Source: Rebecca billardiae RCC1528 (Eukaryota > Protista > Haptophyta). From it: a DNA stretch of 64,000 bases. The stretch spans positions 62,001 through 126,000 of the forward strand of contig OZ251230.1 of assembly GCA_965240325.2 (NCBI GenBank), read 5' to 3'. Both the position numbers and the translations under genes were made by a program. Position 1 is the stretch's first letter, and every line of letters begins with the position of its first letter. Shown here piece by piece: positions 37,354 through 53,407 of this stretch. The notes under the pieces were generated by a model. That model did not search any database and had not been told where the DNA came from. It was given only the letters and a program-made list of their open reading frames with translations.

Positions 37354-37961
37354 CCGTAGGGCCTCGAGCAGCTGTACTTTAGTAGCTAGCGCAGGTCTCT
37401 ACTACTGAGTACTGCACTGACTCGATGCGGTAATCTCAGCCGAGCCTACTAGGTTCAACTTGCGCTGGCGCGGACGTGCCGACTGCTGAACGGAACGATC
37501 GCCGGATCGATGACTCGACCGGCGTCGACCGGGTGTGGTTGAATGCATGGGAGGGTGGCCCAAGTAACTGCATGGCCGCCGAACGGATTCGCGCCATCAA
37601 CGATCAAGTCTTCCGCCGACAGAAGCAGCCAACAGCGTTGCAGCGCGCGTCTAGCTGACCATGCGCATGCCGACAGCGCGGGTCCGTGCGCTGCCTACCG
37701 GCCGGACCAAGACGGGCGCAGACTGAGACCGTGAGAGACCGCTTTGCCGAGGCCGCCCGATACGTGCGGCTGCGGGGCGGAACCGGGTCGGACCGTGCGG
37801 CGGCGCAGACTCCGCCGAAACCTGCTAGCGCGCGGCTCCGCCCGCGAGAGCCGCTCCGCGACCGATGCCTCGAGCGGCGTGCTCATCGGGCGGTTGCGCA
37901 CGAGCACGAGCTGTGGTGTGGGGCAAGGAGCGAGAGTCACAGCGACGCCGGGGCGGCCGCC

Positions 37962-40900
37962 ATGCTGGCGCTGTCTGGGACAGCAAACCTGCGCTGGCCG
38001 CCTGGCGCCTGGGGAGCGGCTGGCGGGGAGGAAGTGGGCACCGGCGGCGCCCGGCCCAAGGAGCGGCGCACCGCGCGGCGGAGGCGCGGCGCGGGCCCGA
38101 TGCTCCGCCTCGGGCGGCCGGGGCCGGGCGCGCCCCGCCGCTTCGTGGACGACGACGTCGACGAGTACAGCAGCGACGCCGAGCGCTCGGACGACGACGC
38201 CGAGGGCGACGAGCGAGCGTCGCCCGCGCCCGGCGCGCCGCCGGCGGGCGGCGCCGCCCACCCGCCGCCGCCGGGCGCGCTGAGCCGGTTCAGCGGCGCG
38301 AAGCGGAACTTCGCGGCGCCGTCGCGCATGCGCCTCTCCCTCACCATGCCCAGCCGCATGAGCGCCGGCCGCCGCCTCTCCGGCGGCTCGAGCGCGCCCT
38401 CGCACGAGCTGGACGAGTCGCCCGCGAGCGTGGCCGCGGCGGTCGCCGCGTCGGGGCGGCGCGAGTGGAAGCGCGCGAGCGCGGGCACGGTGCGCCGGTG
38501 GATCATCAAGGCCACCTCGAGCGAGCCCGGCGCGCCCAAGCCCAAGTACGTGCGCAAGCTCATCGTCGAGACGTGGGAGTGCGCGCGGCTGTCGGGGCCT
38601 CTGGAGCCGCTCACGCGCGCGTGCGTCACGCGGCTCGTGGCGCGCGCGGGCGCGGCGGAGCCGGCGGTGGCGTTCAAGGCGCTGGTGGCGCTGCACCGGC
38701 TCATGTCGCAGGGCCCGCAGGAGGCCGTGCCCACGCACACGCGCATGCTGCCCGAGCTGCGCGCCGCGCTGAGCCGGCACGGCGCGGGCGCGTGCGCGCG
38801 CGACGGCGCCGCCACCGTCGCGGTCTCCGCGGCCGCGGCGGCGTCGGCGGCGGTGCCGGCGCGCGCGCGCAGCGCGTCGCCCCGCTCGGCGTGGGGCGGC
38901 ATGCTCCAGGCGTACGCCGCGCACCTCCTCCTCCGCACCGCCTTCTTCTCGCGCGCGCACCGCGCGCTCTTCTACGAGCCCAACCTCTCGCTGCACGCGT
39001 GGTGCGTCGCGCAGCCGCCCGGCGCGATGAAGGCGGGGCTGGCGACGCGCGTGGAGGAGGGGTGCGCGGCGGAGCTGCTCGCGCTGCTGCGCTCGGCGCT
39101 CGCGCTGCTCGACCTGCTCTTCGCCGTCGCCGGCCTCGGCGCCGACGCGGCGGGCGCGGGCGCGGCGGCGGGCGGCAACGGCGGCGCGGCCGGCGCGGCC
39201 GGCGCGAACGGCGCGGCCGACGCGGCCGCCGCCGCCGCGGCCGCCGACGGCGACGCGGCGGGCGGCGGCGGCCCCGCGGCGCAAGCTGGCGGGCAGCCCG
39301 CCGCGCACGCGCTCTGCGCGATGGGCGCGCTGTACACCGCGGGCGTCGACGCCGCCGACGTGTTCGCCGCGCTGCTGTTTGCGCTGCGCGTCGTGGACGC
39401 GAGGCGCGCGGCCGCGGCGGCGGAGGCGCGCGGCGCCGGCGGCGGCGGCGGCGGCGCGGAGGGGGAGGGCGGGCGGCACGCGTGCGCGCACGAGGCCGGC
39501 GCGGACGCGGCGGCGGACGCGGCCGGCGCGGCCGGCGGCGCGGCCGACGTCGAGTCGCTGCGCGCGGCCGCGCGCGCGCACCACGGCGCGCTGTGCGCCT
39601 CCGCGCGCCTCATCTGCGCGCACGGCGCCCAGCTGCAGGTCGCGCTGCCGCTGGGGCTGCTGCAGCTCGCGGCGGGCGAGCGGCCGGCGGAGCTGGCGCC
39701 GGGGGGCGCGCGCGCCGCCGCCGCGGCGAGGGGCGCGCAGCAGCAGCACCCGCCGCAGCGGCAGCGCGCGCACTCGCTCACAGGCACGCCGCCGGCCTCG
39801 CCGCGCGCCGAGCCGGCGCCCGAGCCGGAGCCCGCCCAGCCCGAGCCTCTGATCGGGCTGAGCGGCGCGGGCGGCGGCGCGGGCGGCGCGGGCGGCGGCG
39901 CGGTCGCGCAGCGGCGCGCGCACGCCTTCGCCGCCGCCGCCGCCTCCGCGCCGCTGCTCGGCGCCGCGGCGGACGTCGGCGCCCCGCTGCCGGCCGAGTG
40001 GCCGGACTCGGGCTGCCGGGGCGACGCGCTGGGGGGCGCGCCGCGCACGCCGTCGGGCGGCGCGGGCGCGGCGGCGCACGTGGGCGCGCACGCGCCCGCG
40101 TCGCCGCGCACGCCGGCCACGCCGCGCGGCCCCGCGCCCCACGGCCCCGCCGTCTCGCTCCTCGACCTCGGCGTCGAGGACTTTGCCCTCGGCGCGGACG
40201 GCTCGGCCGGCTGGTTCGGTCCTCAGTCGCTCACGGCGCAGATCAGCGCGCTGCTGCTGCACGAGCAGCCGCGCTCGCCGAGGGCGGCGGGGGCGGTGCA
40301 GCCGCACGCGGGCGGCGGCGGCGGGGCTGGCGGGGGCGGCGCGGCGGCGGAGGCGCTGCCGCCGCTGCCGGCCGCGGCGCACGCGCAGCGCCAGCCCGCG
40401 GCCGCGGCCGCCCCGTGGGCAGCGGCGCGCGCGGGGCAGCAGGGACCGGCGCCGTGCGCGCCGCACCCGCCGGGCGCGTCCGCCGCGCTGTGCGCGGACG
40501 GCGGCGGCGCCGCCGGCGGCGCCGGCGCGAGCGGCGCGCCCGGCTGCTGCGCGCCCGGCCCCGCCCCCGGCACCGCGGGCGTCGACCTGTGGACGCGCCC
40601 CAGCTGGGCGTCGGAGCGAGACGGCTCGGGCAGCAGCGAGGAGGAGGAGGGCGGCGGGGACGAGGATGAGCTGAGCGCGCCCCCGCTGCCGCCGCGCGCG
40701 TTCGACGCGCTCGGGCTGCCCGCGGAGGAGCGGGGCGGCGCGCCGGGCGCGCGCCCGCCGCAGCACCACCGCGCCGCCAGCGGCTTCGACTGCGCGCCGC
40801 GCGCGTGCGCTGGTTGCGTGAGCGCGTACGCGTGCGGGCACGCGGGCGCGCTCGTGCGGCGCTGGACCGAGCCCGAGCCGCAGCACCACGGGCCGCCGAG

Positions 40901-42063
40901 CGCGCATGCCGGCCGCGCCGCGCTCGGCGCGTGCGGCAGCCAGGCCGACGGCTGCGGCGGCGGCGCGTGCGTGCAGCGCTCGAGCACGGCCGCCAGCCTG
41001 CCCGCACACGGCCGCGCGGAGGGCGGGGCCGCACCCGCGCCCGACGGCCGCCGGTTCAGCGGCAGCTTGAGCGGGTGCTGCGCGTCGAGCGCGCAGCACC
41101 CGCCGCGCGCGCGGCACGCCTCGCCGCCCGGCTCCGCGCCGCGAACCGCCGCCGCGGGCGGAGGCGCGTGCTCGCCGCACACGCCGTGCACGCCCGCGCG
41201 CGGCGGCGCGGAGCCGGGCGCGCGCTGGCCCGCGGACGTGGGCGCGCTGCCGTCCTCGCTGCTCGACGAGCGGCTCCCGGGCGCGCAGGAGCTGCTCCTG
41301 GCCGCGCCGCTCGGCGCGTGCGTGGGCGACGCGCGCGCCGAGGCCGGTGGGGCGGCGCCGCCCGCGTGCGCGCGCGTGCTCGCGCCCGCGGCGCGCGGCG
41401 GCGACGGCGGCGCGAGCGCGCCGCCGCAGCCGGCAGCAGCGGCGCCGCAGCAGCAGCCGCAGCAGCACGCGCAGCCGGCGCCGACGCCGCCGCAGCGCCC
41501 CGGCCGCACGCGCCCCGGGACGATGGCGGCACGCGCGCCGCCGCCGCCGCCGCCCGCGCAGCAGCAGTTGCCGCCGAGCGCGGGCTGCGGCGCGGCCGAG
41601 GGCGGCGCAGGCGGCGCGGCGGCTGCATACCGCGCGGCGTCGGCCGCCGCGGCGGGCACCTGCGCGGGACCGGACGCGCCCGCGCAGCAGCACCCGCCGC
41701 CCGCCGCCGCCGCCGCCGCCGGGCGCTCTCGGCCGACGCACCGGCGCTCGCCCTCGGTCGACTTGAACGCGCTGCGCTCGCGGCAGCAGGCGGCGGGCGG
41801 CGCGCCGGGCGCGGTGATGGCGTCGCTCGCGGCGGCGGCGGCGGCGCAGCACGCACACGCGGCGTGCGCGCCCGGCGGCGCCGGCGCCGCGGCGGGCGGG
41901 AGCGCGGCGGCGCACCTCGCGCTGCCGCCCGCCGCGGGCGGCGCGCTCGGCAGCGGCAGCGGCGGCGGCGCGTGCTGCGGGCTGCGCGCGCACGCGCTGC
42001 GCAGGCTCGAGCACGCGTCGCAGCAGCAGCAGCGGCAGCAGCAGCTGCCGCCGGGCTGCGGCT

Positions 42064-42097
<34 letters not shown>

Positions 42098-44300
42098 GGG
42101 CAGCGGCGCCGGCATCGCGCCGCCGCCGTGGGCCGCGCGCGTGGGCGGCGCGCGCGCCGAGGGCGCCGAGGGCGGCGAGGACCTGTGGGCGCACTCGCCG
42201 TGCTCGGGCGTGCTGCCCGCCGAGTGCGCCGCGCCGCCGCCCTCGGCGTGCGCCGCGCCGTGCGCCGGCGCGGGCGCCGTGTGCTCGCAGCTCTCGACAG
42301 AGCTGCCGCTGATTGCCGGAGCGGTGCGCGGCGCGGGCGGGGCGTGCGCGCGCGGGCTGCCCGCCTGCGGCTGCTGCGGCGCGGGCAGCGACGCGTCGAG
42401 CGTCGGCGCGGGTGCGCGGAGCAGCGGCGGCGCGCCCCACGCCGCAGCAGGCCCCTTCCTCTCGTGCACCGCGGCCAACGTCGCCGCCGCCGCCGCCGCC
42501 GCCGCCGCCGTCGCGGGCGCGAGCGCGGACGGCTCGGGCGGCGGGTGCGGCCGCGCGGCCGCGTGCGCCGAGCGCGCGGACGCGTCCTCCTCGCAGCAGC
42601 CCTCGCCCACGGGCACGTTCATCTGCCACTCGGACGGGGAGGAGGAGGCCGAGGAGGCGGGGCCGGGCGGCGGCGGCGGCGCGTGCGAGCGGCGCGCCGC
42701 CTCGGCCGTCCCCGCAATCTCGATCGGCGAGATCGGCGAGGCCCCGCGCGAGGAGGAGGAGGAGGAGGAGGCGGAGGAGGCGGGCGGCGCGGCGGCGCCC
42801 GCGGGCGCGGCGGCGGCGGCGTCCGCGGCGAGCAGCGCGGCGTGCAGCCTCTGCCACCCGCCCTCCGGCCCCTCCACCTTTGTCGTGCACGCCAGCGACA
42901 CCTCCGCCTCCGCCTCGCGCTCACACGGCTCACACGGCTCCCACGCGCCACACAGCTCACACGCGTCGGCGCTCGGCTCGGCCGCGGCGCTTGCGGCGGC
43001 CGCGGCCGCGGCCGAGTCGGGCGGCGGCGCGGCCGCGGGCGCGCGCGGCGGCGCGGGCGGCGCGCCGCGCGCGCGGCACTCGCACTCGCGCTCGGTCGAC
43101 GCGCGGCGCGCGCCCTCGATCGAGGCGCTCTCCGCCTCCGCCGCCATCCCGATGCGCGAGATCTGGCTCGACCGGCTTGTGGGGCGCGGCTCCTTTGCCG
43201 AGGTGTACAGGGCGGAGTGGCGGGGCACGCCCGTGGCGGTGAAGCGGATGCTGGGCAACCCGCTGGCGGACGCGCGCGCGCTGCACGACTTTTTGGTGGA
43301 GGCGTCGATGCTGCAGTCGCTGCGCCACCCCAACATCGTTCTGTTCATGGGCGTGTGCGTGCGCGCGCCGCACCTCTGCATCGTGACCGAGTACGTCAAC
43401 AACGGCAACCTCTTCGGGCTGCTGCGCGACACGGCGCGCAGGCCGAGGCTGCCGCTCGCGCTCAAGCTGAGGATGGCGCTCGACGTGGCGCGCGGGATGT
43501 GCGCGCGCGGCGTGCACGCGCACAGCCGCCGCCGCCCGTCCCTGTCGGCGCGCCCGTCCGGCCGGCCTGACACGCGCGCGCGTGCCACACGCGCGCGTGC
43601 GCACGCGCATCAGGAACTTTTTGCACCTCAAGGCGCCGCCCGTGCTGCACCGCGACCTCAAGTCGCTCAACCTGCTCGTGGACGAGGTGGGCCGCGTCAA
43701 GATCACCGACTTTGGCCTCGCGCGCGCCAAGGCGATGGCGGGCGCCAACATGACGGCGCAGTGCGGCACCTGGCAGTGGATGGCGCCGGAGGTGCGCACA
43801 GCGCGCGCGCAACAGCGCGCGCGCACAGCGCGCGCGGGAGGGTGGAGCGGGTGGCCGCCCACCGCCCCGCCCGCTCCCGCCCCCCCGCCCCCCCCTCCCC
43901 GCAGGTGCTCCAGTCGCAGCTCTACTCCGAGTCCGCGGACGTGTACTCGTACGGCATCGTGCTGTGGGAGCTGGTCACGCGCAGCCTGCCGTACGAGGGG
44001 CTGAGCGCGCCGCAGGTGGCGATGGAGGTGTCGCGCGGGGGCAGGCCGGAGGTGCCGCCCGCCTCGGCGGACGCGCCCGAGCGCTGGCTGCAGCTGATGG
44101 TGCAGTGCTGGCACACGGAGCCGAGCGCGCGGCCGGTGTTCAGCGAGGTGCTGCGCGTGCTGCTGCTCATGCAGAGGGAGGTCGCCGCGCAGCAGCAGCA
44201 GGCGCAGCAGCAGGCGCAGCAGCAGCAGCAGGTACTGCAGCAGCAGCACCAGCAGCCGCCACCGCCGCAGCATCAGACATCGCAGCCCTTGGCGTCGTAG
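37962..44300 (+). CDS. ANTH-domain + low-complexity linker + C-terminal TKL (Raf-like) kinase; exons 37962-43498, 43614-43791, 43905-44300 (~2036 aa)
   Basis: ANTH-like [35 protein letters not shown]. Kinase motifs [42 protein letters not shown] and [11 protein letters not shown]. The two introns total 228 nt, which is why the ORF track reads through. Confidence 0.85.
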
Positions 44301-44560
44301 CGGCCAGCAGGAGCTCGTCACCGCCGTCGTGGGCAGCTGGTCCAACACGTCGGAGGCGGGGACGAACGTACTCAACAGCACTGCTTCTGCAGAGAAAAGG
44401 TCCGGCGGAACTGTATGACGATACAGTCGTAGTCGTATCTTTTCACTACTGTCGTCCGGGTATACAGTCGTAACATCAGTAGCTATTGTACAGCACTGCT
44501 GATGCTGGCCGTTTGCTGCGATGCGGCTTTGCGCGGCGGCGGACTGATATGCTGCGCACG

Positions 44561-45649
44561 ATGGGTGCCGCGTGCTGCTGCGCGCGTGCCGAAGAGGCGG
44601 CTCCGCGAGGCCCCGCGGCATCCGCCGACGCCCTGGTGCCCGTCGTGCCCACGGCAGAGCCCAAACCCGCCGCCGAGCCGCCACCCGCGAGCGGCCCAGC
44701 CCCGGCCTCCGCCGCCGAGCCGCCGCTCGCGTTTGACGCCGTGCACGCGGCCGTCGTGGCCGAGATCGAGGCGCACGCGGACGTGTGGGTGCGCGAGCGC
44801 AAGGACCTCGAGGCCGTGGTCGCGCGGTTCCGCGCGCTCCGCGGGCGCGTGCCGATGATGCGCCTCGTGCACGGCAGCACGCTCGCCCAGCTCGGCCGCA
44901 TCCCGCGCTCGGACGAGCTCGGCGCGGACGGCGCGCCGTACTGGCGGCCCCTCGACGAGGTGCACGCGGCGTGGGAGGCGCGGCCGATCGAGGGCGACGC
45001 GGCCGGGCGGCGGTACGCGCGGCTCAACGTCGCCTTCCTCAGCCACCGCTGGACGCGCCCGGCGGAGGGCCGCCCGGACGACGCGTCGGGCTCGAAGGCG
45101 CAGATCGTGCGCGCGCTCACGCAGTACGGCCGCAGCGTGTACGCGCACGACAGCTGGTGGTGGATCGACTGGACGTGCGCGGACCAGCAGCACACGGCCG
45201 GGCACATCGCCGCGCTGCCGCTCTACATCGCCGCCTCCACCGAGCTCGTCTCCGTCTACCCGCCCGGCACCGACTACGACCGGCGCGGCTGGATCCGGTG
45301 CGAGCGCGCGCTCGGCGCCGCGCTCAACTCGCCGCGCGCGTGGAAGATGGTGCCGCCCGAGGAGTTCGCGCGGCTGCGCGCGGTGGGCGCGGCGCCGGCG
45401 CAGACGGAGTGGTGGACGCTCGACGACCCGGCGCTCGGCGAGGCGAGCGTCGAGGCGGACCGCGCGTACCTCGCCGCCCTCTCCGCGCTCGCGCTCAGGC
45501 TGTGGCCGGTCGGGTACGCGGCCAACTGGCACGCGGAGAGCAACCAGTACGCGGACTGGGGGTACGAGCCGAGGCTCGAGTACGGCAAGACGCGCATCTT
45601 CACGTGGTGCATGAACTACTACTCGGGGCTGGGCGCGGAGGAAGCGTAG
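44561..45649 (+). CDS. HET (heterokaryon-incompatibility/TIR-like) domain protein with N-terminal MGAACCC acylation motif (alternative ATG 44549)
   Basis: Motifs FLSHRW, WIDWTCADQ, LPLYI and YDRRGWIRCE; Gly2 followed by three Cys. Confidence 0.7.
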   Translation: MGAACCCARAEEAAPRGPAASADALVPVVPTAEPKPAAEPPPASGPAPASAAEPPLAFDAVHAAVVAEIEAHADVWVRERKDLEAVVARFRALRGRVPMMRLVHGSTLAQLGRIPRSDELGADGAPYWRPLDEVHAAWEARPIEGDAAGRRYARLNVAFLSHRWTRPAEGRPDDASGSKAQIVRALTQYGRSVYAHDSWWWIDWTCADQQHTAGHIAALPLYIAASTELVSVYPPGTDYDRRGWIRCERALGAALNSPRAWKMVPPEEFARLRAVGAAPAQTEWWTLDDPALGEASVEADRAYLAALSALALRLWPVGYAANWHAESNQYADWGYEPRLEYGKTRIFTWCMNYYSGLGAEEA

Positions 45650-45973
45650 CCCCCGGCACGCGTACACCAACAGATTCTACTCACATCGTTCCGTCACCCC
45701 ATATGAATGATACGAGGCAATCGGACGTTTTCGCGCTCGTCTTTCTAACAAAACGACAATGGACCGGCGCGCGGTACTTGTCCGGCGGATCGCGCCGCTT
45801 TTGTAGGAGTGTTCCCATGAGATTGCGATCTTACTTCTCGCCGCGCGCGCGCGCAACCAGCGACTCTGAGTGAGCAAGCAGCTCGTCATTCATCGCCGAG
45901 CACACAGCGCCGACCCGACGTCGTGCTCGAAAAGCCCACCGCGGGCGGCAGCACCAGCAGCGGGCGCGGCGCG

Positions 45974-47231
45974 ATGGCGAATGACGGCCTCTGGCGCGTG
46001 GTGGGCTACAGCCCGAGCATCATCGGCGACTCGCCCTCCGTCGACGTGTACAGCCCCGCGCGCGCCAACATCCACGAGCGCGACCTGCCGCTGATCCGCG
46101 CGATGGGCGCGACGCACATCCGGCTGTGGTCGTGGAGCCTCGAGCGCGACTACCGCGGCTTCCTCGACGCGTGCCAGGCGCACGGGCTGCGCGTGCTCAT
46201 CTCCTTCCCGCTCCGCTCCGAGTGGTACGAGGACATCGTCTCGCGGCGCGCGCTCGAGCTGATCGAGCGAGACTTCCGCACGTTTGTGCAGACGCACGCG
46301 GGGCACGAGGCGGTGGCGATGTGGCTGCTGGGCAACGAGCCGAACGTGGACGCGGCGTACAACGACAACCCGCTCACGTTCTACGACGCGGTCCGCCGCC
46401 TCCTGCGCGTGCTCGACGAGCTGGACGCGACGCACAAGCGGCCGTCGTGCGTGCCGCTCGGCGACGTGCAGATCCGCGCGTGGGTCGAGGCGTACGAGCG
46501 CGAGCCGCTGGGGCTGGACATGTGGTGCCTCCAGGTGTACCGCGGGCGCACGTTCGGCGGGCTCTTCACCGACTACTTCGAGCACAGCACGCTGCCGCTG
46601 CTCATCACCGAGTTTGGGTACGACGCGTGGAACCTGCGGAACGGCACGGTGCGCGCGTGGCCGCAGGCGGACGCGGTGCACGCGCTCTGGAAGGAGATCG
46701 AGGCGGCGGCGCGGCTGCGGCCGTGCCGGGGCTCGCGGCCGAAGGGGTGCGTGCGCGGCGGCGCCGTCTTCGAGTGGAGCGACGAGTGGTGGAAGGGCGC
46801 GGGCGACAGCGCGCGCGCGATCATCGGCTGCCCCGACCGCGACGCTTCCCGGCAGCGGCCGTGCGGCCACGACTCGGACGGCTTCGACGACGGCCACCTG
46901 TCGGAGGAGTACATGGGGCTGGGCGAGATCTTCGACTCGCACGGGCAGCACTGCCTGCGCCTGCGCCCCGCGTACTACCGCCTCGCCGACGCGTGGGGCT
47001 CGCTCGGCCCCGCCAAGGCGGCGGCTGGCGGCGGCGTGCACTGCGCGGGCGGCCTCCCGGTCTCCACGCTGCTGCCGTGGGCGGCGCTGTTCGGCGCGCT
47101 GCTGCTGGGCGCGCTGCTCGCGCTGTGCGTGGCGGGCGGCGTGCTGCGCCGCTGCGTGGGCGCGCCGGCTGACGACGTCGAGGCCAACCCGGGGCGCCAC
47201 CGCACACGACCGATGGGGCGGCTGAGCACGA

Positions 47232-47282
<51 letters not shown>

Positions 47283-49415
47283 GCGCGGCTGCGCCCGCCA
47301 AGGGCGGCGGCAAGGCCGAGGGCGGCGGCAAGGGCGAGGGCGGCGCCGCAGCGCCCAAGCCGGCCGCCGCCGCCGAGCCGGCGGCGGAGGCGGCGCCGCT
47401 GCGCAAGGCGCTGCGCGAGGCCGCGCTCGCGTGCCTGCCGCCGCCCACCGAGCGCGCCGACGACGGGCGCGCGCGCCGCACCAAGTCGCGCGTCAAGTCG
47501 GTCTCCGAGAAGCTGGGCTCTGTGCACGTGCACGCGGACGAGGCCGAGAGCGGCCCGTTCTGCGCGCACCTGCTCAACGCGTTCCGCACGTACGCGGTGC
47601 CGGCGTGCTCGGGCGAGCTGCTGTACGACGCGCGCGGCGACGACTCGCACGACAACTACTGGCCGTGCTCGCGCGAGCCCGCGCTGCTCGAGTGCCCAAA
47701 GGTGATGCGCGACGCGTGGCGCGTCGCCCTCGCGACGCTCTTCCTCGCGCTGCGCTCCGACTCGGACCTGGTGTTCCACGCGCCGCAGAGGCTGCGCCGC
47801 GTGTTCGAGGCGTGCGTCAAGATCCGCGCGGCGGGCGCGAGTGTGCACGTCACGCTGCACCTGCGCGCCGCGCTGCGCCAGCTCGACGCGGACGTCTCGC
47901 TGCTGCAGGGCGACCTCGGCCCCGCGGCGCGCGCGGGGCCGGGGCGCAGCCGACCGCGCGAGGCGGAGTCGGTGGACAACCTGAACGCGCTGCTGAGCGT
48001 GCACGAGGCGAAGGCGCAGGTGGCGCTGGACGAGGGCGCCGCGCCGCCGCGCCGGCCGTCGCTCTTCTCGGCGAGCGCGCTCTCGCGCGCGCTCGGCGCG
48101 CCCGAGCTCGGCTTCAAGGCGTTCCGCACGCACTGGTCCGCGCCCGCCACGTGGCTGGTGCTGCCGCTGATCGCGGGCAACTTCCTGCCGATCGTGCGCT
48201 TCAAGGTGTTCGCGCTCGGGCTGGGGCTGTTCGTGCTGCAGTCGTGGCCGTGGCTGCAGCGCCGCATGTACGCGATCCCGCTGGCGGCGCGCACGCAGGA
48301 GCTCTCCTTCTGGCAGCTCGCCCTCGCCGAGGCGTCCATGTGCGTGTTCGAGGGCTGCGTCGACCTGGTCATCTTCACGAGGCACGACGCGTGGCCCGCG
48401 CTCAGCGCGCTGCGCGAGCGCGGGCTGTGCGCCACGCTGCGCGCCGCGACGGGGCGCGACGCGGTGCTGGCGTTCACGATCGCGGCGCTGCGCGCGGCCA
48501 ACCAGCTGCTCGCGCTCGCCTTCATCCTCGCCGTCTGGCCCGCCGGGCTGCACGACGAGGGCCCGCTCCGGCCGTTTGGCGCGCTCGCGACCGACGAGCC
48601 CGCCGCGGTGGGCGCGCCGCGCGTCTCGCGCGGCTCGGCCGTGTTCGTCGCGCTCGGCGGGCTGCGCGCGCTGCTGAACGTGGCCAAGCTCGTGCTGCAG
48701 CGCATGCGGCTCAACCAGCTCGCGCAGTCCGGCTGGCAGAACGCCGCGTCCTTCCTCTTCTTCTCCGCGTTCACCGTGCTGTCGGTGCTGTGGGAGGCGT
48801 GGGTGATCGTGCCGCTCGCGCTCTCCTTCTCCGTCTCGCAGACGTGCGGCTGCAAGGACTTCCGCGGCGAGGAGAGCGGCGCGCTGCCGTGGTGCACCGC
48901 GTCGCAGGGGCTGATGGCGTGCGGCCTCGCGGTGTACTCCGCGTGGATGCTCATCCTGATCACCTTCCTCATCACCTCGCAGTACATCTTCGTGCTCGTG
49001 CTGTGCGTGTTCGGCTACTTTGAAGGCACGCGCCGCTCGGTCGGCTCGGTCAAGCCCAAGCGCGTGCTCTTCTCGGCGGGCCGGCGGCTCTTTGGGCTGG
49101 CCGAGCTCACGCGCCGGGGCGAGGAGTCGCACGCGCGGCTGAGCGACGGCGACGCGATCTGGCAGCGGATGGTCGCGCACATGCGCGAGTCCGACCTCCT
49201 CTCCGACGCCGAGGCGGACGAGCTCGGCGGCCACACGCGCGCGATGCGGCGCGCGCTCGACGCGCTCGGCGCGGACGGCGCGCGCGCCGAGCGCGCCGTC
49301 GAGGGCGCGCGCCCGTGGCTGGGCGCGCTGGGCGTGGAGACGCTGCTCGGGCTGGCGCAGGCGAGGATGGTGGGCGTGGACGAGGCCGAGCCCGCCCTCG
49401 ACGCGCTGCTCCAGC

Positions 49416-49446
<31 letters not shown>

Positions 49447-52400
49447 CGGGCCGCCGAGCGCGCCGCCCGGCGCGCCGCCGCCGCCCGCCGCCGCCGCCGG
49501 CTCGGGCGGCGAGGACGTGCTCGGCCACTTCCGCGCGCTGCGCGACGCGTTCCGCTCGTGGCACGTGGTGCGGCTGCGCGTGGACAGCGCGCAGGACTAC
49601 CTCGCCTTCTTCCTCGGCTCGCTCGACGCGCTGGGCCTCGTCGGGCGCGCGAAGCTCAACTGGTCGGCGCACACGCGCCCGCCGCTGACCACGCTCATCC
49701 CCGCGTACGGCGAGACCGTGCTGCTGTCCGAGGAGGACCTGCGCGGCGCGGACGAGATCGGGATGAGCAAGCTGGAGGTGCTCGCCGAGATGTACCCCAT
49801 CGAGTGGTGCAACTTCGCCGAGCGCGTCGCGCGCGAGTGGGGCGCGAGCGCGGCCGCGGCCGCCGCGGCCGCGGACCGCCGGCAGCGCGCGTCGCAAAAG
49901 AAGCTGAGCGCGCCGCAGCTCGCGCACGCGGCGAGCGAAGCGGCGCGCGCGAGCGCGCTGGGCAACGGCACGTTCGCCTCGGTGCTGCTGCGCGAGTTCG
50001 TCGCGGGTGGCGGCCCCACGCTCACCGCCCTCGCCGACGGCCGCCCCGCCGCCTCGCTCGGCCTGTCCATCCGGCTGTGGGCGTCGTACCGCCAGCAGAC
50101 GGTCGCGCGCACCGTGCGCGGCGCGGTGCTGTACCGCCAGGTGCTCGCCGACGTCTTCGCGCTGGACGCGGGGGCGGGCGGCGGGTGGGAGGGCGAGGAG
50201 GCGGGCTCCGCCGCCGCCGCCGCCGCCGCCGCCGCGCGCGCGCACGCCGCCTCCAAGACGCAGGTGCTCCTCGCGCACCAGCGCTACTCGGTGGACGGCC
50301 GCGTGCGGCAGGACGTCGACCTGCTGCTGCGCTCGCACGCGGGGCTCGAGATCGTGTACGACCTCGCGCTCCCCGAGGGCGGCGAGGCGCGCGGCGGGGT
50401 GAACGCGCTGCTGCGCTCGACGCTCAGCCAGATCGCCGAGCGCCTCGGCGGCGCCGCGCCCGGCGCGGACAGCGCGGACGGCGCGCCGCCGCCCGCCAGC
50501 GCGCCGCCCGCCAACGCGGCGCACGAGGACGTGGTCGCGTACGCGCGCGCGCACCCGGCCGCCGGGCTGCTCGTCGACGGGGGCTCGCGGCTGCGCGGCG
50601 GCGTGGCGGTGCAGCACGCGTCGGTGTGCGTGCGCTTCGGCCCCGACGGCCGGCGCGAGGTCCTCGCCGTCCTCCCCCGCCGCCGCGCCCTCGTGCCCAA
50701 CGCGCGCTACGTGCGCGACTGGACGAGCGCGCGCTTCTCGGGCAAGGCGTGCAACCTGCGCAACGGCGCCTACTTCGTGCGCGGGCAGGTGGTGCAGGTG
50801 ATGGACGCGAACATGGACTGCAAGTACGGCGAGTACCTCAAGATGTCGTGGCTCCTCGAGAAGTTCGGCGAGCGCGGCACCCGCCTCGTCGGCTGCCGCG
50901 AGGCCATCTTCACGCGGTACGACGGCGCGGTCGGCCGGCACGCCGCCAACGCCGAGTGGACGTTTGGCACCATCTTCCAGCGCGTGCTCGCCACGCCGCT
51001 CAACATCCGGCTGCACTACGGCCACCCGGACTTCTTCGACGCGGACTGGCTCCGCCGCGCGGGCATCCTCGCCAAGGCCTCCCCCGTCGTGCACCTCAAC
51101 GAGGACGTGTTCGCCGGGTACGAGCTGCTGCGCTCCGCCGCAAAGTCGGAGCACCGCGACTTTGTGCAGTTTGAGAAGGGGCGCGAGGTCAACTTCGTCG
51201 GGATGAACGCGTTCGAGGGGAAGCTCGCGCTCGGCGCGATCGCGCAGTGCCGCACGGCGGACGTGTACAAGCTCAACCGCGAGCTGGACATCTGGCGCCA
51301 GGCGATGCTCTTCCACTCCTCGCTCGGCTTCTACCTGACGCAGGCGCTGTCCGCCTTCTCGGTGTACCTGTTCGTGGTCGTGTACGTGCTGCTGGCGCTG
51401 GCGCACATCTCGCTCGACGAGCTGCGCCAGCTCGAGATCGCGCTGGGCACGGAGTGGTGCGCGCGCGCGCGCGCGCGGCGGCGGCGGGCGCCACCGCCAC
51501 CGCCACTGCCACCGCCACCGCCACCGCCGCCACCGCGCGGCACGCTCTCTCTTGCCTCGCGCGCGCGCGCCCGCTGCTGAGCGCGCCGCCTGCGCCCTCC
51601 CTGCGCGCCCTCCGTGCGCGCGCGCGCGCGCGCCTGCCGTGCGCAGGGTGCTCAACATCGGCTTCTCGCTCGTGCTGCCGCTGTTCACCGAGCTCGCCCT
51701 CGAGCGCGGCGCTCTGCCCGCCCTCTCCGAGGTGCTCTTCCACCTGCCCGTCTCCACGTGCCTCTTCGTGTTCCACCTGCAGACGCGGCTGCACACGATG
51801 GCGATGGGCAGCGCCACCGGCAAGGCCGACTACGCCAACACGGGGCGCGCGGGGCCCGAGACGCGCAAGACGCTGCTCGAGCTGTACACGCTGTACTCGC
51901 GCTCGCACTACCACCCGGCCGCGTTCCTGCTCGTCCTGCTCGTGCTGCACCGCGTCCTCGTCGCCGACGCCGCGACCGAGTCTCTGCCGCTCGCGTTCAT
52001 GTGGTTTGCCGCGTGCGACTGGCTGCTGGCGCCCGTGCTCTTCTCGCCGATGCCCACCTCCACGTCGGTGATCCGCGACTGCAAGGAGCTGGCGCTCTTC
52101 ATCTCGCGCGGCTTCACGCCGCTCTCCGTCGACGGCTGGTGGGACCTGAGCAAGCCCGAGGTGCGCGACGCCGTCGAGTACCTCCGCGCGCCCGACGCGG
52201 CGGGCCTCGCGCCGGCCGAGCGCGCGGCGCTGCGGGGCGCGGCCGCCAAGCTGAGCGCCGCCGCGCTGTCCGAGCACAAGATGCAGAGCCTCTCGCAGTG
52301 GGTGACGCACGAGCTGCGCGACGAGCTCGAGCACCTGTACCGCCTCTCGCCGCGCGACGCGTACGTCGAGATCATCCGCCGGCTCTGCCTCTCCGCCCTC

Positions 52401-53407
52401 TCCCTCGCCGTGATCGTGCTCGTCCTGCCGCCCGCCGCGATCGCGGTGGCAGTGCACTCGCTGCTGGGGTGGGCGGCGCACCAGGGCTGGGCGCACGTCG
52501 CGGGGTACCTGCTCGACTCGGCGGACTCGAAGCTCACGGCGCGCGAGCGGCGCGGCGCGCGCGGCTCCGCGGCGCGCGGCCTCCTCGCCCCCGCCATCCG
52601 GCACACGCCCTCCGTGCTCGCGCTGGGCGTGTACGTGGCCGTCCTCGGCTGGTCGCTGCCCACGCCTGCGGTCGCGCCCAGCGTGAGCGCGGCGCTGCTG
52701 TCGTTGCTCTGCGTGCTCGCGCTCGCGTACCAGATCGAGCAGGTGCGCGGCGCGCGGGCGCACGCCCTCCCCCGCCCCGCGCGCGCGCCGCCTGCACGCC
52801 CTGGCGTCACGCGCTCCCCGTGCCCCCTCCTCCGTGCGCGTGCTCAGGTGAACCTGATCCTGGCCTTCCGCGCACACCGCGCGGCGCCGGCACACACGCC
52901 CGCGCCGGGCGAGATGCCGGTGGTCTCCGCGTTCGAGGACGTGAACGTGCTGCACAAGGTGCGGCGGCGCTACCCGCAGCACTACGTGATGCGCATGGTC
53001 GGCGGCTTCATCCTCGGCGTGCAGGTGTGCGCCCACCGCGCCGCGCGCGCGCCCGCCCGGCCGCGCCGCCCGCCACGCGCCCGCGCCGCGCGCTCAGCTG
53101 CGGCGCCCGGCGCGCGCGCGCGCGCCCGTGCGCGCAGGGCGCCCTCGCCTTCTTCCTCGTCGTGTTCGAGCGCGTGCACACGAGCGTGCTGCTCACCAGC
53201 ATGGTGGCGGAGGCGCGCTCGCAGCAGCGCGTCGGCCGCGGCCACGTGCTCGACCGCGCGTGGCTGCAGCACGTGGAGCGCGAGAAGGCGCGCGCAAAGG
53301 CGCGCGCCATCGTGCCCGCACGGCCCGTGCCGCCCGCGGCAGAGGCGCCGCGGGCGAGCTACCTGTACAGCCGCAAGCCCGCGCAGTCATCCGGCGCGCG
53401 CGCATGA
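45974..53407 (+). CDS. Clan GH-A glycoside hydrolase fused to GT48 (FKS-type) 1,3-beta-glucan synthase; exons 45974-51456, 51647-52742, 52848-53024, 53138-53407 (~2341 aa)
   Basis: GH motifs RDLPLIRAMGATHIRL, WLLGNEPN, LLITEFG and GGAVFEWSDEWWK. GT48 motifs LIPAYGE, YPIEWCNFAER, RLWASYRQQTVARTVRG, REAIFT, RLHYGHPDFFD, HLNEDVFAG, KGRE and FEGKLA. Both domains are in one exon. Confidence 0.88.

Follow-up and report, generated by a model that had tools for sequence, protein, structure and literature searches.

Can an enzyme that makes beta-1,3-glucan carry, in the same polypeptide, a second enzyme that acts on its product? This question is raised by a locus of the haptophyte Rebecca billardiae RCC1528 (assembly GCA_965240325.2). 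The window, i.e., the whole stretch of DNA that was analyzed, comprises 64,000 nucleotides (contig OZ251230.1, positions 62,001 to 126,000 of the forward strand). An earlier description made from the letters and open reading frames (hereafter, the sequence-only reading) had assigned positions 45974-53407 to a glycoside hydrolase (GH) domain joined to the N terminus of a GT48 glucan synthase. Our analysis predicts that 45974-53407 is one gene encoding one multi-pass membrane protein, and we conclude with high confidence that it is a real and conserved fusion of a GH157-like barrel to GT48. The features of the protein are listed below; aa, amino acids; TM, transmembrane; GC3, G+C content of third codon positions.

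45974..53407, + strand: whole gene, ATG to TGA, four exons, about 2,341 aa (translations, GC3 profile, splice borders)
45974..47008, + strand: clan GH-A (beta/alpha)8 barrel, GH157-like, aa 1-345 (AlphaFold2, Foldseek, VIA, family profile)
46337..46339, + strand: Glu122 in GNE, predicted acid/base, immediately C-terminal to beta-strand 114-119 (DSSP); aligns with the NE motif of GH158 and GH157
46610..46612, + strand: Glu213 of the TEFG motif, predicted nucleophile, in beta-strand 209-214; at least 90% conserved in the family
46781..46798, + strand: DEWWKG motif, aa 270-275; columns D270, E271, W272, W273, and K274 invariant or near-invariant
46829..46864, + strand: Cys286-Cys297 pair, probable disulfide; both Cys shared by 26 of the 36 aligned proteins of the family, some of them secreted and bacterial
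47066..47152, + strand: TM0, single helix after the barrel, aa 365-393; hydropathy peak 2.42, homologues with one TM segment in the same place
47153..48154, + strand: linker, aa 394-727, predicted to be cytosolic; GC3 0.94-0.98
48155..49024, + strand: first TM bundle, six hydrophobic segments, aa 728-1017 (hydropathy; six also in homologue P0170)
49025..51322, + strand: GT48 catalytic domain, predicted to be cytosolic, aa 1018-1783; best Pfam stretch 50741-51397

The reading frame that opens at 45974 has no stop before 51578. Its GC3 is 0.94-1.00 up to about 51456, in the barrel as well as in the TM helix and low-complexity linker. At 45974 GC3 jumps to 0.98, from only 0.48-0.66 in the 300 bp upstream, and the ATG proposed as the start is preceded by 324 bp of noncoding sequence. 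The GC content in the window is 60-88%, which makes stop codons scarce, and an antisense open reading frame (ORF) of 1,977 aa (45890-51823, - strand) overlaps the whole gene as a by-product of 75% GC and near-100% GC3. Because such a frame can arise, ORF length is poor coding evidence in this genome, and the case for one gene therefore rests on the GC3 periodicity, a collinear paralogue, and homologous fusions elsewhere. The sequence-only reading had placed the parts from the barrel to the FKS catalytic loop in one exon and had reasoned that a splicing artifact was thereby excluded. These parts do share one frame of exon 1, but the whole gene has four exons, and in this genome the one-exon argument is weak; the three lines of evidence just named are the stronger ones.

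The paralogue is a second fused copy on contig C19 (52% identity over the barrel), one 2,423-aa open frame with both barrel and GT48 matches. BLASTP of the window protein against it gave a single collinear hit (aa 8-1818). Compared segment by segment, the two proteins are most alike in the GT core (68% identity), followed by the barrel (53%), the TM bundle (42%), and the linker (31-34%). The C19 copy, too, starts only a few residues ahead of beta-strand 1; the roughly 490 bp before it are noncoding and richer in AT.

Outside this genome, six long proteins among the best 150 barrel representatives also match the GT48 half of the window protein. They come from Apiculatamorpha spiralis and Papus ankaliazontas (both prokinetoplastids), Flectonema neradi (which we take to be a diplonemid; its cluster includes a 2,843-aa member), "Hpha" (presumably Hemistasia, which we likewise take to be a diplonemid), and two metagenomes. 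Four of the six come from single transcriptome contigs, so that both halves share an mRNA in the species concerned. Pfam finds GT48 plus GH72-type matches in three of the six (P0078, P0170, and P0099). Five of these outside fusions are intact and the Papus copy is degenerate: in this protein (P0173, 2,959 aa) the barrel lies in the middle, at aa 982-1303, behind about 970 extra residues, and lacks both catalytic Glu residues, yet one TM segment and GT48 still follow. All of these fusions surfaced in an exhaustive search of cluster representatives; a word-index search for long barrel-bearing proteins returned bacterial multidomain proteins only. The exons were searched against the databases separately rather than as a joined spliced protein, and the trees described next used the exon 1 part.

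In the GT48 tree, a single clade (100/100) unites the window gene and its paralogue with the fusions from euglenozoans and metagenomes; it also takes in a Physarum transcript and one unnamed fragment, both of which have an incomplete N terminus. The clade stands apart from a callose synthase, from the oomycete and Chlamydomonas enzymes, and from the other GT48 loci of this genome, the eight linked to KRE6/GH16 among them. A branch of the GH tree (92/71; present in 90% of bootstrap trees) has all eight fused barrels on the same side. Taken jointly, the trees favor one old fusion event, as far as limited rooting and sampling allow. By these relationships the window gene is a member of an old GT48 subfamily distinguished by an N-terminal, GH157-like clan GH-A barrel.

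What, then, is the barrel? AlphaFold2, given a 36-member alignment, returned a barrel of alternating strands and helices with a mean predicted local distance difference test score (pLDDT) of 90.1 and a predicted template modeling score (pTM) of 0.91. All the top structural matches of this model are clan GH-A barrels. The first match with both Foldseek (E, 4.5e-13) and VIA (Z, 28.8; root mean square deviation, 2.7 Å over 289 aa) is LaGH157 of Labilibaculum antarcticum, with GH1 and GH2 barrels at a Z of about 25.5. The window barrel keeps all 24 near-invariant positions of the 36-member alignment, including those of the GNE, TEFG, DEWWKG, and EEYxG motifs, and E213 aligns with the Glu that was replaced in the LaGH157 E224A mutant (TEFG in PDB 9fz9, TAFG in 9g4n). 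As modeled, the domain is a clan GH-A retaining glycosidase fold with both catalytic Glu residues in place, the acid/base after strand 4 and the nucleophile on strand 7, at the positions (46337 and 46610) where the sequence-only reading had put them. A profile of the family, searched against the PDB, gave the following matches.

GH157, LaGH157: E, 3.2e-26
GH158, GH158(Pro): E, 1.6e-21
GH72, Gel4: E, 3.9e-21
GH72, Gas2: E, 4.7e-17
GH2 barrels: weaker than GH157, GH158, and GH72

With the window barrel alone as the query, the best PDB match was a GH158 enzyme (E, 6e-4). The likeness to GH158/GH2-type beta-1,3-glucanases that the sequence-only reading had named holds, with GH157 as the nearest solved relative, followed by GH158 and GH72. 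The GH2 catalytic barrel profile (PF02836) scored 12 bits against a cutoff of 21; the N-terminal domains of GH2 are absent, the barrel starting at residue 5. PF03198 (GH72) gave no match to the window barrel at an E of up to 1. By profile and by structure the barrel is closest to GH157, but because its identity to LaGH157 is only 19-20%, and because GH158 and GH72 score nearly as well, it may belong to a family of its own. Its homologues make up a large family (1,443 cluster representatives at an E of up to 1e-3, in the exhaustive representative search). Most of the relatives inspected come from bacteria; several of them are secreted, about 400 aa long, and 32-37% identical. The best-scoring relative (P0024; E, 5e-57) is a 986-aa protein of the prasinophyte green alga Cymbomonas tetramitiformis (KAK3271990.1), which passes the Pfam cutoff for GH72 and whose gene model has no GT48 part.

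The synthase half is recognized by PF02364 in both exons searched (exon 1, 236 bits, E, 1.1e-69; exon 2, 62.8 bits, E, 2.5e-17, spanning profile positions 560-717; cutoff, 37.2), and yeast FKS1/GSC2 chains match it with an E of 4e-35. Hydropathy places further TM segments from aa 1784 onward and in exon 2, so that the catalytic domain lies between two TM bundles; the TM helix that had been claimed after the barrel is likewise found by hydropathy. The linker consists of a Gly/Ala/Pro-rich stretch followed by blocks conserved with the C19 paralogue. No homology between the linker and the cytosolic N terminus of FKS1 was detectable by sequence.

The account of this protein that we hold, with moderate confidence, is that the fusion gene places a tethered barrel on the exoplasmic side of the membrane, where it acts on the nascent chain. 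The synthase would polymerize UDP-glucose and thread the chain through its own TM channel, and TM0 would hold the barrel a few residues above the bilayer, so that the barrel could act in cis on the beta-1,3-glucan emerging from the channel. Its most likely activity would be endo-cleavage, resulting in release of the chain and a limit to its length; a close alternative would be transfer to another glucan (transglycosylation, as in GH72). Beta-1,3-glucan, the GT48 product, is also the substrate of the three nearest families, GH157, GH158, and GH72. The synthesize-and-trim or transglycosylate role that the sequence-only reading proposed is plausible, and the chance that trimming or release is the barrel's main activity seems to us to be slightly less than even.

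The exoplasmic position (the lumen of a vacuole or vesicle, or the outside of the cell) is probable by homology and by the positive-inside rule. We place the barrel there because its homologues have signal peptides and share the same TM0 and the six TM segments, because basic residues follow TM0, and because the Cys pair is conserved. The euglenozoan homologues have an N-terminal signal peptide, the barrel, and one TM segment, which in P0170 is followed by six more before the GT domain. In the window protein, TM0 is followed by RR and further basic residues, and none of this basic cluster precedes it. The linker and the GT48 catalytic domain would then be cytosolic.

Several observations weigh against the account of a tethered, exoplasmic, active barrel. 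Neither algal fused copy has a hydrophobic leader; both start five to eight residues before beta-strand 1. Reverse signal-anchor transfer of a folded 360-aa N-terminal domain would be unusual, and the barrel could instead be cytosolic. Searched alone against Pfam, the window barrel falls below every GH threshold (GH2_C, E, 0.11). The GT48 half is divergent, with 236 bits versus >500 for the other paralogues, and of 41 positions near-invariant in a sample of GT48 enzymes it keeps 35, the other six being substituted (e.g., NQ to NL and RG to SA; the count sets aside two alignment columns in intron read-through). At the four substituted motifs that were inspected by eye, the C19 paralogue is likewise substituted. 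In addition, the gene model is a prediction from genomic sequence, and the function is one from the sequence and a modeled structure.

The absence of a signal peptide at ATG 45974, which the sequence-only reading had remarked upon together with a possible upstream exon, was confirmed. A three-frame reading and a scan for donors and acceptors found no ATG-led hydrophobic exon and no GTGCGC-type donor in 45650-45973, and the matching region upstream of the C19 paralogue likewise contains no signal-peptide exon.

Among other explanations, the barrel may be mainly a transglycosylase like the GH72 Gas/Gel enzymes, joining or branching new chains rather than releasing them, which we consider somewhat unlikely. 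Fused homologues (P0078, P0170, and P0099) and the Cymbomonas homologue pass Pfam GH72 (29.5-51.5 bits versus a cutoff of 25.9), the family profile matches Gel4 and Gas2 (above), a retaining mechanism permits transfer, and eight other GT48 loci in the genome adjoin KRE6-type GH16 remodelers. However, the nearest relatives by both sequence and structure are the hydrolases GH157 and GH158, the window barrel itself has no GH72 match, and the Cys-rich C-terminal module of GH72 is absent.

It is improbable that the barrel is cytosolic in this alga, with a role such as primer processing, degradation of granule glucan facing the cytosol, or regulation of the synthase. Such a location would account for two algal copies without a hydrophobic leader, and because a stand-alone homologue on contig C7 retains one, loss of the leader looks specific to the fused copies. 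Against this, the homologous fusions have signal peptides together with the same layout of TM0 and six TM segments, the basic residues come after TM0 and not before it, and the conserved Cys pair suits an oxidizing compartment. We also know of no cytosolic beta-1,3-glucan that could serve as a substrate.

Noncatalytic versions of the barrel exist, as the loss of both Glu residues in Papus P0173 shows, but that the window barrel is dead or weak, serving as a glucan-binding guide for the nascent chain, is very improbable, as it and its paralogue keep both Glu residues and all 24 near-invariant positions. Hardly credible is a misreading of two neighboring genes as one frame through high GC: long spurious ORFs do occur (the antisense frame above), a Met is present in the linker, and the model rests on genomic sequence, but no stop follows the barrel, GC3 does not drop below 0.94 across the junction, collinearity with the paralogue extends through the linker, and homologues derived from transcripts are fused.

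The account of a tethered, exoplasmic barrel can be set beside known systems. GH157 is a family of beta-1,3-glucanases, exemplified by BcellWH2_01931 (PMC10229575). LaGH157 (PDB 9fz9/9g4n/9g5g) is an endo-beta-1,3-glucanase crystallized with laminari-oligosaccharides. It shares with the window domain the clan GH-A barrel, the NE acid/base, the TEFG nucleophile, and the D(E/G)WWKG and EEW(W/F)G motifs; the third of these is DGWWKG in LaGH157 and DEWWKG in the window barrel, the family signature being common to both. LaGH157 differs in being a soluble bacterial protein of about 530 aa with about 200 extra C-terminal residues, whereas the window barrel leads directly into a TM helix and then the synthase. 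In GH158, a retaining laminarinase, the catalytic pair is Glu143 and Glu229 (GH158[Pro], 9oro; PMC13195107). Like the window domain, its members (BuGH158, 6pal; 9oro) have the fold of clan GH-A, here as retaining endo-beta-1,3-glucanases, but they are bacterial and soluble, have an Ig-like C-terminal domain, and score below GH157 structurally. The GH72 enzymes Gel4 (8pe1) and Gas2 (2w62), titled 1,3-beta-glucanosyltransferases in the PDB, are also of clan GH-A; the family remodels newly made beta-1,3-glucan outside the membrane. They differ as separate, glycosylphosphatidylinositol-anchored fungal proteins with a Cys-rich or CBM43 tail.

Coupling of a GH to a synthase has precedents. A passage of PMC13612389, citing Judelson 2017 and Morris 2009, describes GH16-GT48 fusions in oomycetes, and the same paper states that the synthase-GH fusion architecture is restricted to oomycetes. 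Those proteins and the GH16-linked GT48 loci of this genome resemble the window gene in having a remodeling GH domain and GT48 in one polypeptide; they differ in that GH16 is a beta-jelly roll rather than a GH-A barrel, and in belonging to another GT48 clade. In Schizosaccharomyces pombe, the GT48 synthase Bgs3 is coupled with a GH16 partner, Ghs2 (PMC13612389). The tight coupling of GT48 to a GH domain is the likeness there, and the difference is that the two are separate proteins and that the partner is GH16. Bacteria, too, have synthases joined to a GH-type domain by which their own product is transferred, cyclized, or sized: NdvB (GH17 plus GT2) and Cgs, the cyclic beta-1,2-glucan synthase (GT84 plus GH94). 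These are built from unrelated GT and GH families.

The sequence-only reading had allowed that such a fusion might prove to be already characterized and widespread. It does recur, both within this genome (the C19 copy) and among Euglenozoa, but we found no description of a GH157-, GH158-, or GH72-like barrel fused to GT48 in the open-access literature, which likewise yielded nothing of relevance on a diplonemid glucan synthase or on LaGH157. The window gene is thus a real member of an apparently undescribed but widespread variant of a known synthase-GH fusion design, a second kind in which the hydrolase is GH157-like and not GH16, and one that is conserved across distant protist lineages.

The genome contains at least 11 GT48 loci, of which eight are accompanied by a KRE6/SKN1-type GH16, two by the GH-A barrel, and one (on C34) by neither; 10 of the 11 GT48 loci found are therefore linked to a GH domain. 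The eight GH16-linked loci are on C3, C8, C11, C13 (near 1.71 Mb), C19 (near 0.42 Mb), C20, C24, and C30. At these loci the KRE6/SKN1-type GH16 lies a few kilobases upstream of GT48, for five of the eight in the same long open frame. Because a second kind of fusion is conserved and because 10 of 11 loci are GH linked, the data support physical coupling of synthesis and remodeling as a general design. How beta-1,3-glucan synthases set chain length and pass their chains to remodeling enzymes is an open question. In fungi, coupling of a synthase to a remodeler has been shown only recently, for the two-protein pair Ghs2-Bgs3 (PMC13612389). A single-chain system allows the coupling to be probed through two glutamates. 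Storage beta-glucans of marine algae hold a large pool of carbon, which gives the enzymes that fix their size and solubility a wider interest.

Paramylon-like granules are made by Euglenozoa as well as by pavlovophyte haptophytes. A joint reading, unlikely as a whole, is that the fusion marks a distinct and ancient class of storage-glucan synthase shared by Euglenozoa and this alga, in which a glucanase or transglycosylase tethered at the channel exit would set chain length or the way granules of linear beta-1,3-glucan are packed. If this is true, the algal barrel either crosses the membrane without a signal peptide or has moved to the cytosolic face, and either solution would be unusual.

The exons and introns of the gene are as follows.

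45974..51456, + strand: exon 1, encoding the barrel, TM0, linker, six TM segments, GT48 catalytic domain, and first C-terminal TM segment (continuous frame)
51457..51646, + strand: intron 1, 190 bp, GT-AG, rich in CG repeats; the splice TG|...|G repairs the frame shift from +2 to +0
51647..52742, + strand: exon 2, encoding the remaining GT48 family region and C-terminal TM segments (PF02364, hydropathy)
52743..52847, + strand: intron 2, 105 bp, GT-AG (CAG|GTGCGC ... CTCAG|GTG)
52848..53024, + strand: exon 3 (frame, borders)
53025..53137, + strand: intron 3, 113 bp, GT-AG (CAG|GTGTGC ... GCGCAG|GGC)
53138..53407, + strand: exon 4, with stop TGA at 53405-53407; GC3 0.96 in frame

The donor of exon 1 is TG|GTGCGC at 51457, and all three introns are located 3' of the synthase catalytic core. 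The introns are as GC rich as the exons and filled with CG repeats, with GTGCGC or GTGTGC donors and GCAG or TCAG acceptors. GC3 periodicity is lost in them, and this and the frame shifts are all that betrays them.

Contig C7 encodes a third protein of the barrel family (L015, 4762-7439; G000:C7:1102761-1105438) in a stand-alone, two-exon gene with no GT48. In addition to both catalytic motifs, the product has a signal peptide, a Cys-rich stretch resembling EGF, and a TM segment at its C terminus, and is membrane anchored.

Upstream of the fusion gene is a separate gene on the same strand (44549-45649, +), with its own N terminus and with its stop at 45647-45649, 324 bp before the synthase ATG; the stop and the N terminus speak against its being part of the fusion gene. 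It encodes a 366-aa protein that had no match in a Pfam search, and a first impression of a HET-like motif found no support there. The protein begins MLRTMGAACCC, which we take to resemble an N-terminal acylation site. The proteins encoded upstream of the window gene and of its paralogue are dissimilar (E, 1.6), which speaks against a segmental duplication with a shared upstream neighbor. Farther upstream, a long open frame (37686-44300, +), which could be one large gene or several, encodes an ANTH domain at aa 272-348 and, much farther on, a protein kinase domain at aa ∼1828-1938.

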